Shown here piece by piece: positions 56,450 to 61,565 of a DNA stretch of 64,000 nucleotides. The stretch is from Syncephalis fuscata S228 (taxonomy: Eukaryota; Fungi; Zoopagomycota). The stretch is from positions 496,001 through 560,000 of the forward strand of contig JAHLTZ010000002.1 in assembly GCA_025786725.1 (NCBI GenBank), written 5' to 3'. Numbering within the stretch: position 1 is the stretch's first letter; every line of letters begins with the position of its first letter. The translations under genes and the position numbers were made by a program. The notes under the pieces are model-generated. The model made no database searches, was not told the DNA's origin, and saw only the letters and a program-made list of their open reading frames with translations.

Positions 56450-56947
56450 TTAAAACTGCCAGATAGCTGCACCAGCTGCTACTAACATACCGGCACCCAT
56501 GGTCATTACAGCCATTTGCTGTCTCTCGGCCGCATCAACTTCAACATGTCCCCATGGTGGTGAAGTAGCGGGAGCCCGGTCAGTATTGGCCGAACTATCG
56601 ATAATCGATTGTGGAGGAGTGTCATTTGACTTAGAACTGTTGCCGCCACTGCTCTTATCACTGTTACTATTGCTGTTGCTGTTACTATTGCTGTTACTGT
56701 TGCTATTGCTGTTATTGTTACTATTACTATTACTGTTACTGTTACTGTTACTGTTATTGTTATTATTGTTGCTATTGTTGTTACTGTTGTTACTGTTATT
56801 GTTATTGTTATTGTTATTATTATTATTATTATTATTGTTGTTGTTGTTGTTATTATTGTTATTGTTTTGCTGAGCAGCAACTAAATCGCTGTTAGCCAAC
56901 AATGCAATGGCTACAATTGCAAACGAGAGAATAACGGTTACGCGCAT
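56450..56947 (-). CDS. Small secreted Asn/Ser-rich, probably GPI-anchored surface protein
   Basis: Signal peptide MRVTVILSFAIVAIALLANSDLVAA, poly-N then (NS)n tract, DAA omega-like site and a hydrophobic C-terminus. Confidence 0.75.
   Translation of the reverse strand: MRVTVILSFAIVAIALLANSDLVAAQQNNNNNNNNNNNNNNNNNNNNNNNNSNNSNNNSNNNNNNSNSNSNSNSNSNNNSNSNSNSNSNSNSNSNSDKSSGGNSSKSNDTPPQSIIDSSANTDRAPATSPPWGHVEVDAAERQQMAVMTMGAGMLVAAGAAIWQF
56657..56868. repeat. Coding trinucleotide/hexanucleotide microsatellite (AAY)n / (AAYAGY)n on the minus strand
   Basis: Continuous run of ttg/tta/ctg triplets on the plus strand. Confidence 0.9.
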
Positions 56948-57397
56948 GATGCTACAGATGGATCTAAAGATAGTTAGAACTAGACGCAAACAAAGCTAAT
57001 CAAAGTGCTAGACAGTAGTAGTAGTAGTACTGGTAAAAGACAAGATGCTCAATTCCAAAATGATGAAAAGCAAAAGTTAAAGGCGGAGTCAAAAAGGATC
57101 GGTATTTGTATGAGGTGCCTTCTATTAGTGCATGACAATCCTTTGCATCAATAATATTGAGTGTGTGTGTGTCATATCTTTATCAAATATATTAATAAAC
57201 ACAGTTATAAAAATAAATATTATTAGTATTATTGTTAGATCATAGTCTTATTGGATTAGTAACAGCTGTTACAATTGCGTTACATGTATCATAGTATTAT
57301 TTAATAAAAACATGTAGAATTAGGAAATAATAACAAACGAAATACTAGGCACCAAATAAAAGAAAAAGCAGATATAAAATAGAAAACAGTAGAGATG

Positions 57398-60300
57398 TTA
57401 TGTTGTTGCATCATCGGGTGTGTTATCTATATGTCGTAGAGCACGGGTAGAGCGGGCAGACGAGCGATTCGATGACGCTCTTGCTACTAGCTTGTTATTG
57501 TTATTACCGCTATTACCAATGGCAGTTGAAACTTGACGACGAGCTGGGCGGGGTAGGCGGCGTGTTGCTTTAATGGCATGTTCTACCGATGGCAGTTCGC
57601 TGTAATTCTCCTTTATCGTTTCTGGACCACTACTACCTTGTGAGCTAGGTGGATCGAGTGGTGATGAGCCACTACTGTCCCCTTGTCTATTACTGATGCG
57701 AGGAGGTGAAATATCCATTGTATCAACGTGGTGGTGGTGGCGGTGTTGTTGATGACCACCAATTGTCGATTCAACAGGTGGCAAGCGGGTTGTATTGGGT
57801 GAAGGTCGGCGTCGGCGTTTATTTGGACGTTCCGATGGACTTGGCGACCAAGCATCATCTTCATCAGCATTGTGGCTAGTACGTGCGGCAATAGGACTAC
57901 TAGAAATGGTTGGTTCTTCCGAATTAAAATTCACTTCTGGCAGCATAGGTAGATGATGGTGTCCTTTGGCCGCAATTGGCTCGTCGTGTTCAATTGATCG
58001 TTGTATATTGCCGGTTTCTCTGAATTTCCGTAGAATAATATCATGTGGCCGCGTGGCTGGCCATTGACGAGGAAATTGATATTCTCGTCGTAATGGCGTA
58101 GCACCTGTAGGCTGATCAGGCTATTATTGTAATAATAATTATTATTGTAATTATTAGTAGTAATGTATTATGCTAACCTGAATGCCTGTAATAATCATGG
58201 TGTCAAATTCATTGCATGTTTGTTCTAATGTAGCGCACATAGTTTGTGATTGCTGTTCAACTACTTCTCTTATTTGATCCATCTAATAATACAGTCAAAT
58301 GTATGTATATATGTAAATATTTGATAGTAATTAAACATTAGCTTATTTACCTTCTGTTTCGTATCATGAGACATTGTCTTGCCAATATCTTCTAATCTAC
58401 CTGTACTCTGTTGCCATGTTTGATAGCCATCGAGACAATCTTGCGTAAACCCATTAATATGTGCTCGATATGGTTCCTTGAACAGATCTAATTGCGTATT
58501 GGCTATTGAAATGGATGAGTTAATAGGCTATATGTTTGTATTTTATTTTTTACCTTTACTGCTAATCTCATTGAGTGCATTGGCCGTATTATCAGTTGTT
58601 TCTAATTGTTGCTGTAGTGTATCTGCGACTACTGTTTCAACATCATTGCTTGCTTGTTGAATCTGTTCAACAGATGTGGCACCCTGTTGTTCTGTCACGT
58701 TTAATTGTCGAGTTGCAGTTTGCACCGTAGTTTGCAGTTCCGTTCTACAAGTCTCAATATTATCATTGGCCTTTGTAACGATTTCCACTTGTTCTTGAAC
58801 AAATGTGCGGCGCTGTATACAAAAGTTAATGAAATAACCAAACAAATAAATAAATAGTTAATGTTCATATAGAAAAGGATATCATTTAGAGATTGTGTAT
58901 TGGCACTTTGTGCTGCAGTTAACATGTTCTGTATGCCACGCTCTTGGCTATTAGTAAGATCCGTTAGAAGTTGCATCATACTCGAAACGACCGTTTGTTG
59001 AGCTTGTTTCGCTGCTTCTTGTTCCTTCTTTGCTACACAGTTCAGCTGTTCTAAATACAGACTAGAACGACGTTGCTATAGAGAAGAATAGTTGTAACTA
59101 TATATGCCACTAGACTAGCTAATAAACTACTTACTTCGTTTGCCACCTCTTGGGTCAATGCATTAATAATTGACATGAATGCATCATTCTGTGCCTTCAG
59201 TTGTTGTGTCATCGACTCGTATAATGACGTGATATTGCCATGTAATGTAGCATTGTGCGCTTTTGACTAGACTTTAATGTCAGTCAACGCATTAAATTAG
59301 ACTCACTATCTTACCTGATGTTCTAGCTGAGAAACTTCCTGCTTTAGTTGGTTGAACAGTGCGTTAAATGCTTCACGCGATACCTCTGCTTTTTGAAGAG
59401 CATTTTGCTGAAGATCATTGCAAATAAGCTGAGTTTTTTCGATAAACGTAGACATTGAGTCTATGTGCTGATCAAATTCCGACTTCATTAGATTGCCATG
59501 TGTATTAATCTCGGCCATCTTTAGTTCCACAGTAGTTGATGAGTTTTGTGCCAACTATAAAGAGTAATTAGAAGGCTAATTTGTAGGCTAGTCTGTATTA
59601 AATAATACACTTACATCTTCACACTGTTTAGAAAATGAATCGGTCATGACTGTATGCTCATCAATTAGATTCATCTGTACTTGTTGATTGTCGGTGATAT
59701 TCGCTTTTAATTCATGAGTACGTGTTTGAATAAATGACTGCATATGTGAGGCAGCCACCATATGTTGTGCTTCCACTTCTTTTTTACGATCAATCTTGGC
59801 ATGGAGTTGATCTACATCGACGGTTACTGATTGTAGCGTGCTTTCTAGAATAGTAGCCACCGCATTCAAACGCTCTTCTGTTGCAGTATGCGCGACTGTT
59901 AGCACTTCTTGTTCGGTTAAGTTTTGCTTTGTATTGCGAAGATCGATTTCGGTGCGTTCGAGTACTTCTCTGCTTTCTCTTAAATCACGCTCGGTTGTTT
60001 CGAGTATCTTCTTTGTTTCGGTGAATAGTTTCATTTGTTGTAAGAATTGCTCTTCTGCTTGGCGTAACTGCGCTTCAATAGTTTCTATCGCTTTGCGTTG
60101 TTCGGTCACCTTTTCCTTATTTGACGTATTTTCGAACATAAGCTGGTTGTACTCTTGTTTTGCCATATAAATGCCATTCTTCTCTTGAGTAGCCAGTAAT
60201 GCTGATTTCAAACGGTCAATTTCCGTGATATATTCCTTGATGAGCATTTGTTTGGTCATACGCTGATTGACCTCAGGCTTGTTGCGAATATTCTTGGCAC

Positions 60301-61565
60301 GGCGAGCATAATCAAGCGTACTTAGCGTCTCTTCACGTGCATTTTTTGCAGGCGATATAGTGGCAATAATGCATGTTTTGGTACGGCCACCCAATGAATC
60401 TTGTAGTAATCTTGTTAAATTAGAATCGCTATTGTATGCCATCGTTATTGTTTATTGATATTTAATCAGTGTGAATGTCTATGTATGTACACTTACCGAT
60501 ATGGTATATGACCAGCCTTGTCTACCAAAGCATTAATGACGCGACCCAGTGTTAGTAGACTTTTGTTGATGTTACCGGCCTCACGAGCCCGTTTGTTTTC
60601 CGCACCAGAACGGCCAACACTCTCAGAACCGGCCAAATCAACCAAGTTTAGCTTGCCGACCTTTAGTAGCTCCTCTCCATCTTCTGTGACCTCTTTAGTA
60701 TGCACAGTAATGGCGAATATGGCATGCGATCGCGATGAATTTTCATTGCATTTAGTCGCTGCTACTTGGCGCTTTCTAGATCCTTTCTTTAGCCACGCAA
60801 TGCCATCTCGTGCCGAGTTAACTGATACTTCTTCCAGCCCTTGAATAACCACTCGTCGCAGTCCTGATGGCTCTTTGTATATGGTCAACTTGCGATCGTC
60901 ATTAAAAGGCGACAAAAGATCGCGTAACTCTTCATTATACAATTCACTGTATGATAGTTTTACTGAAAATTCAGGCACGTTAGGATCCAGTATTTGAAAT
61001 AACCGATCCAAAGTACGAGGAATAATACCAGCATGGTAACCTTCTACATCTTCCAAATCGCCCTCCATTGTATAGCTAAACAAATAAACATTAGAGCAAA
61101 ATCTAATTAATTTGGTGTAAAACATACGTTTTTCCAGTGCCTGTTTGTCCATAGGCAAATATAGTGCAGTTATAGCCGTCAAGCACTTCTTTTAGTATAG
61201 GTGCAACAATATCATCATACACTGTTTCTTGCGTTGCATCTGGTCCAAATACACGGTCAAATGTGTATTTGCGGGATACTTCCGAGTTTACTTTGACCTC
61301 ACGGCCCGTAACACATGGCGTATCCACAACGGTAGACTGATTTTCACGCTGTTCACGTTCATTACGTCCGCTGTAGATTTGTATCGGCGCAGTTGGTTAG
61401 CGATGCACGCTATAGTCGGAATCTCAAAAACACTTACCGACAACGCACGACAACTTGGATATTCGCTTCTTTAACGTTGGCATGTTGTTTATGGAATGTA
61501 GGTTGGCGAAAATGTTCGCTGGGTGTAGTGCGCCCACTTGCAATCGAGTGCGTCGGGCTTGCCAT
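57398..61565 (-). CDS. bimC: Kinesin-5 (BimC/Cut7/Cin8/Eg5) mitotic motor
   Basis: [41 protein letters not shown], neck [11 protein letters not shown], coiled coil and BimC box [13 protein letters not shown]. About nine introns, one of them AT-AC. Confidence 0.96.
58815..58882 (-). other. U12-type (minor spliceosome) AT-AC intron, 68 nt
   Basis: Minus strand reads G|ATATCCTTTT...TTTCATTAAC ttttgtatAC|AG. Removal gives the in-frame join QSLN-E-RRTFVQ, and no usable GT donor exists nearby. Confidence 0.85.

Follow-up and report, generated by a model that had tools for sequence, protein, structure and literature searches.

A probable U12-type AT-AC intron in the kinesin-5 gene of the early-diverging fungus Syncephalis fuscata

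The kinesin-5 gene and its transcripts

The window analysed here, a stretch of 64,000 nucleotides from one contig of Syncephalis fuscata S228, contains on its minus strand a coding region (57398-61565) which, judged from transcript contigs, a gene model and matches in Pfam and the PDB, is that of a kinesin-5 (BimC/Eg5/Cut7 family). The region comprises 11 coding exons and 10 introns, nine of them GT-AG and one AT-AC, and its spliced frame, read with a local script, runs from 61565 to a stop codon at 57400-57398 and encodes 1189 amino acids. Single exons were used in all the database searches, the joined protein only in local scripts (frame check and alignment to relatives). In the exon-by-exon search the Pfam Kinesin motor domain was found on three exons, and the kinesin-associated, BimC-box tail family Microtub_bind (PF13931) at the start of the last exon (34.4 bits, cut-off 25); the motif TGATPLRR is present in the C-terminal tail. 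The best PDB matches of the motor exon were human KIF11/Eg5 (about 5e-62), the kinesin-5 chain 5mm4 and S. pombe Cut7, compared with 1.7e-37 for kinesin-1. Motors of this family are further characterised as bipolar homotetramers able to slide antiparallel microtubules. On the same minus strand, at 56450-56989, lies an open reading frame of 179 amino acids, hydrophobic at its N-terminus and containing a long run of poly-Asn / (Asn-Ser)n.

The transcript data are assembled contigs of one public run, not raw reads, a form in which rare retained introns can be hidden; the record only guesses that the material is RNA, and the run was taken as a transcriptome because its contigs skip introns. These contigs are 100% identical to the window and, between 57400 and 62000, differ from it only by 10 skipped segments, nine of which have CT..AC ends on the plus strand and hence GT..AG ends on the gene strand. 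At the tenth joint, 68 nt are skipped between 58813 and 58882 with an ambiguity of 1 nt, so that the missing segment is either 58815-58882 (AT..AC) or 58814-58881 (TA..CA). The contig bridging this joint extends for 118 nt on its shorter side, and the summed contig depth of the intron bin, 119.4, equals 213.8 x 86/154, which leaves zero depth in the intron itself. The U12-type AT-AC intron proposed in the initial annotation is thus seen in the contig as the loss of exactly the 68 nt predicted. The evidence comes from assembled contigs rather than reads, and the joint might for this reason be ascribed to an artefact of reverse transcription or assembly, such as template switching between short repeats; it is an extremely improbable reading, as only 1 nt is common to the two sides of the joint, which leaves no repeat for template switching, and the deletion matches canonical U12 signals to the base and restores the reading frame.

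The 68-nt interval, its frame and its splicing signals

The interval (58815-58882, minus strand) lies in the stalk/tail part of the protein, after residue 776 of the spliced model and in phase 1, between an upstream coding exon of 193 nt (58883-59075) and a downstream coding exon of 261 nt (58554-58814), both placed on the minus strand by the contig joints and the gene model. The upstream exon ends with the residues QSLN and a single further base G, and the downstream exon is in a different frame, the junction codon G+AG (Glu) being formed only if exactly 68 nt are excised. As had been claimed from the sequence, this excision restores the frame, producing in a local script a single open frame of 1189 codons; AT-AC ends, which along with GT-AG ends are characteristic of U12-type introns, and actual removal from RNA are given by the contig joint, within its ambiguity of 1 nt, and by the restored frame. 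The upstream frame remains open through the 68 nt (ORF 58701-58979), and several GT-AG or GC-AG pairs that would keep the frame can be listed, so it might be argued that there is no intron at all, the interval being coding and the frame change an assembly indel, or that conventional boundaries lie nearby. The donors of these pairs are very poor (GTGGCA, GTGCCA, GTTTGG and GCAGCA), and the GT ones additionally require acceptors within coding sequence, whereas the donors of the nine other introns of the gene are GTAAGT, GTAAGA, GTAAAT, GTAAAA, GTATGT or GTTAGC; the earlier statement that no suitable GT donor is available therefore stands. Such a reading is already refuted by the transcript contig joint, where exactly 68 nt are absent from a contig otherwise identical to the window, and has almost no probability left.

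U12-type introns are recognised through the 5' splice site RTATCCTTT and the branch site TTCCTTRAY, which lies some 10-15 nt upstream of the 3' splice site. The interval, read on the minus strand, starts with ATATCCTTTT (58873-58882), which conforms to the 5' consensus from the first letter of the intron, and its last letters are TATAC. The branch-site motif TTTCATTAAC (58825-58834, minus strand) contains the candidate branch adenosines 58827 and 58826, which are 11-12 nt from the 3' junction, that is, within the distance typical of U12-type introns. The motif is imperfect, since it differs from TTCCTTAAC by one mismatch, an A replacing the second C of the consensus (TCATTAAC instead of TCCTTAAC). 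This mismatch weakens the duplex between TTTCATTAAC and the GAGUAAGGA of the U12 candidate described below to -3.3 kcal/mol, compared with -8.9 kcal/mol for the consensus, a value no better than that of chance matches inside the U2 introns of the gene; as duplex energies do not separate the intron from these U2 introns, they were not used as support. Two bases past the AC of the 3' splice site there is an AG (TATAC/AG, window 58813-58816, minus strand); splicing to it would take out 70 nt and so change the frame. In the contig it is the AC that is used, and rare use of the AG is something that contigs cannot judge.

The 5' motif taken by itself is not informative at the scale of the window, in which the 8-mer RTATCCTT was seen 4 times against 4.56 expected, not above chance, and the case rests on context and cDNA, not on a motif count. 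The three other copies in the window were rejected as introns, as they are without a branch site or lie inside coding sequence. In the whole genome, by contrast with a reversed control giving 0 matches, a strict U12 intron pattern (RTATCCTT, 20-50 nt, TCMTTRAC, 6-12 nt, YAS) gave 11 matches at 10 distinct sites, so that the genome has a class of such U12-type introns; most of the sites are short AT-AC units with TCCTTAAC that resemble the kinesin-5 intron. Identical 54-nt matches of the form GTATCCTT…TCATTGAC…TAG occur on two contigs (C33:8619-8672 and C343:15162-15215), and by their sequence may represent a duplicated gene or a repeat with a possible GT-AG U12-type intron.

Minor-spliceosome components and assignment of the intron

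The initial annotation had also held that this genome keeps a minor spliceosome, and the genome (29.4 Mb in 371 contigs) was searched for the machinery. A U11 gene scoring 47.5 bits (Rfam gathering score 39) lies about 281 kb upstream of the window on the same contig; it has an Sm site and, as its 5' end, AAAAAGGGG. A U6atac gene scoring 37.8 bits (gathering score 33) carries AAAAGGAGAGA; the 5' splice site ATATCCTTTT is complementary to both of these snRNA sequences. The U12 candidate matches its model over the full length (positions 1-151 of 151) at 34.6 bits (E 4e-4; gathering score 53, not reached owing to large insertions) and has an intact branch-site-binding AUGAGUAAGGA and an Sm-like site. 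Two proteins specific to the minor spliceosome were found above their cut-offs, namely PDCD7/59K (PF16021; 29.2 bits, cut-off 27) and a domain of the Ubiquitin_4 family (PF18036; 38.1 bits, cut-off 22.8), which we take to be SNRNP25-type. With regard to U4atac, there was no match in the Rfam first look and none to a pattern built on the stems of the U6atac found here, while a looser pattern gave 1 match, as against 2 in the control, at a locus where cmscan found no U4atac. The genome likewise gave no match to zf-U11-48K, whose model of only 25 positions makes this result say little, or to CCDC84, for which the control genomes also gave 0, so that this result too says little. The claim of a retained minor spliceosome is in this way upheld for U11, U6atac, a full-length U12, PDCD7/59K and an SNRNP25-type domain, with U4atac the part that was not found.

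The minor snRNAs of this fungus are expanded (C112:215199-215380, C315:4451-4610 and C157:67826-67997; in the extracted loci L002:1501-1682, L003:1501-1660 and L001:1501-1672, respectively). In U11 the first stem-loop is enlarged by an insertion of about 55 nt, one loop of U6atac counts 39 nt against 12 in the model, and U12 contains two inserts, each of about 20 nt. These insertions lower the Rfam scores of the minor snRNAs, and expansion of this kind may be the reason why U4atac escaped detection.

A small class of AT-AC introns is excised by the major (U2-type) spliceosome, and introns of this class have ATAAGT-like 5' sites. That the kinesin-5 intron belongs with them would fit its branch site, which at one core position does not follow the U12 consensus and forms a weak duplex with the U12 candidate, and the absence of U4atac from the Rfam first look and from the results of the two patterns. 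It is nevertheless highly unlikely, in that the 5' site is a perfect ATATCCTTT and not ATAAGT-like, the branch motif is at the U12-typical distance, the gene's nine U2 introns all have GT at their 5' end (GTAAGT-like, GTATGT or GTTAGC), and U11, U12 and U6atac are present in the genome. Three features carry the classification, namely a 5' site that matches the consensus perfectly, the place of the branch motif and, in RNA, AT-AC ends. The 68 nt at 58882-58815 are very probably a U12-dependent AT-AC intron, which would be removed by the minor rather than by the major spliceosome, and there is good support both for assigning it to the U12 type and for a minor spliceosome in this genome.

The steps proposed for its removal follow the established U12 pathway. 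The U11/U12 di-snRNP would bind the 5' splice site ATATCCTTTT through the U11 5' end AAAAAGGGG and the branch site TTTCATTAAC through the GAGUAAGGA of U12, after which U6atac, with its AAGGAGAGA, would take the place of U11 at the 5' splice site. As the branch adenosine lies at a short and fixed distance (11-12 nt), the AC at 58815 would then be chosen, and not the AG two bases further on.

Position of the intron in relatives and comparison with known systems

For comparison with relatives, a set of protein representatives was searched with the exon of 271 amino acids, which returned 150 sequences; 12 loci were fetched, from assemblies including those of Neolecta irregularis (PMC7940399) and Basidiobolus ranarum (bioRxiv 10.1101/2025.03.31.646025), and the exons of most of them were mapped. 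The best relatives are about 40% identical over about 980 residues. A BLAST search with the tail alone (residues 700-870) against the 150 relatives gave nothing at E < 1e-3, and for this reason the tail was compared only as part of alignments of the whole protein, with the shared intron positions as anchors. Seven of the nine U2-type introns, at residues 42, 123, 316, 588, 668, 863 and 914, have position and phase in common with at least one distant fungus, the sharers including Neolecta irregularis and a Mortierellaceae-type assembly (loci L005, L008, L009, L011, L014 and L015 were compared for the shared set), and by this alignment the set is strongly conserved and ancient; an eighth, at 712, is possibly shared as well, with its counterpart at 708 in one relative.

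An intron at the U12 position (776, phase 1) was found in none of the 10 readable relatives, and the same holds for position 949. The locus of Basidiobolus ranarum (L007), whose exons could not be mapped, gave no U12-like 5' site with branch site in a motif scan. Neither of the two most similar motor matches (P0134 and P0005) has an intron at the site; one is a kinesin that is truncated and the other a metagenome contig. In the metagenome contig (ENA ERZ27247753, L017:5001-8295) the kinesin-5 is intron-less and is read as two overlapping ORFs of 798 and 308 amino acids, a split which is probably due to a one-base frameshift and not to an intron. Several of the relatives have lost the majority of their introns, or come from groups that lack a minor spliceosome, and the comparison therefore does not distinguish ancient retention from gain. 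Gain of U12-type introns is thought to be very rare. It seems unlikely that the kinesin-5 intron is a lineage-specific gain or a uniquely retained ancient intron; its off-consensus branch site fits what might be a young or decaying minor intron.

Minor introns together with minor snRNAs have been documented in Rhizopus and Phycomyces (PMC2846911) and in Rhizophagus irregularis and Basidiobolus meristosporus, with 205 and 249 minor introns, respectively, whilst Ascomycota and Basidiomycota yielded none (PMC10639083), in agreement with the view, put forward in the initial annotation, that the minor spliceosome was lost in Dikarya and kept in some early-diverging fungi. The phase 1 of the kinesin-5 intron fits the bias 1 > 2 > 0 of minor introns (PMC10639083). 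The suggestion, made at the same time, that a mitotic motor may be "gated" by a minor intron is speculative and finds no support, as no transcript contig of the public run retains the intron, and in Rhizophagus no link was found between minor splicing and proliferation (PMC10639083); most simply, the intron is one of the genome's minor introns, with no sign of a special regulatory role. A literature search returned nothing that describes KIF11 as carrying a minor intron (the one paper in which KIF11, "minor intron" and U12 occur together deals with other genes), and Syncephalis was not found together with "minor spliceosome".

The phenomenon is already known, and the kinesin-5 intron is a solid but ordinary further example: minor introns and their machinery are documented in several early-diverging fungi, so that no new question is opened. 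The early-diverging fungal catalogue gains one minor intron, well supported and located in the gene of an essential mitotic motor, along with independent evidence of a working minor spliceosome in this genome, and models of this kinesin-5 that allow only GT-AG introns are likely to be wrong at the 68-nt intron. Specialist interest lies in the age of the intron, that is, gain or retention, and in the heavily expanded U11, U12 and U6atac, with U4atac still missing.

Compared with U2-type AT-AC introns, the kinesin-5 intron has in common the AT-AC terminal dinucleotides, whereas the former have an ATAAGT-like 5' site, a distant branch point and a pyrimidine tract, in place of the ATATCCTTT and the branch motif 11-12 nt from the end that are seen here. 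With the U12-type introns of animals and plants, the motifs and the snRNA sequences recognising them are essentially identical; unlike those introns, the present one, at 68 nt, is very short and comparable to its U2 neighbours (48-68 nt), and the snRNAs differ by their large insertions (about 55 nt in U11, a loop of 39 instead of 12 nt in U6atac and the extra segments of U12). From the U12 introns of other early-diverging fungi it is set apart by its host gene, kinesin-5, by a position not shared with the 10 relatives and by the C-to-A change in the branch site, but it has the same 5' consensus, the same kind of branch motif, the same short and fixed distance, AT-AC ends and a non-zero phase and, as in those fungi, the genome carries cognate U11 and U6atac genes and a U12 candidate.
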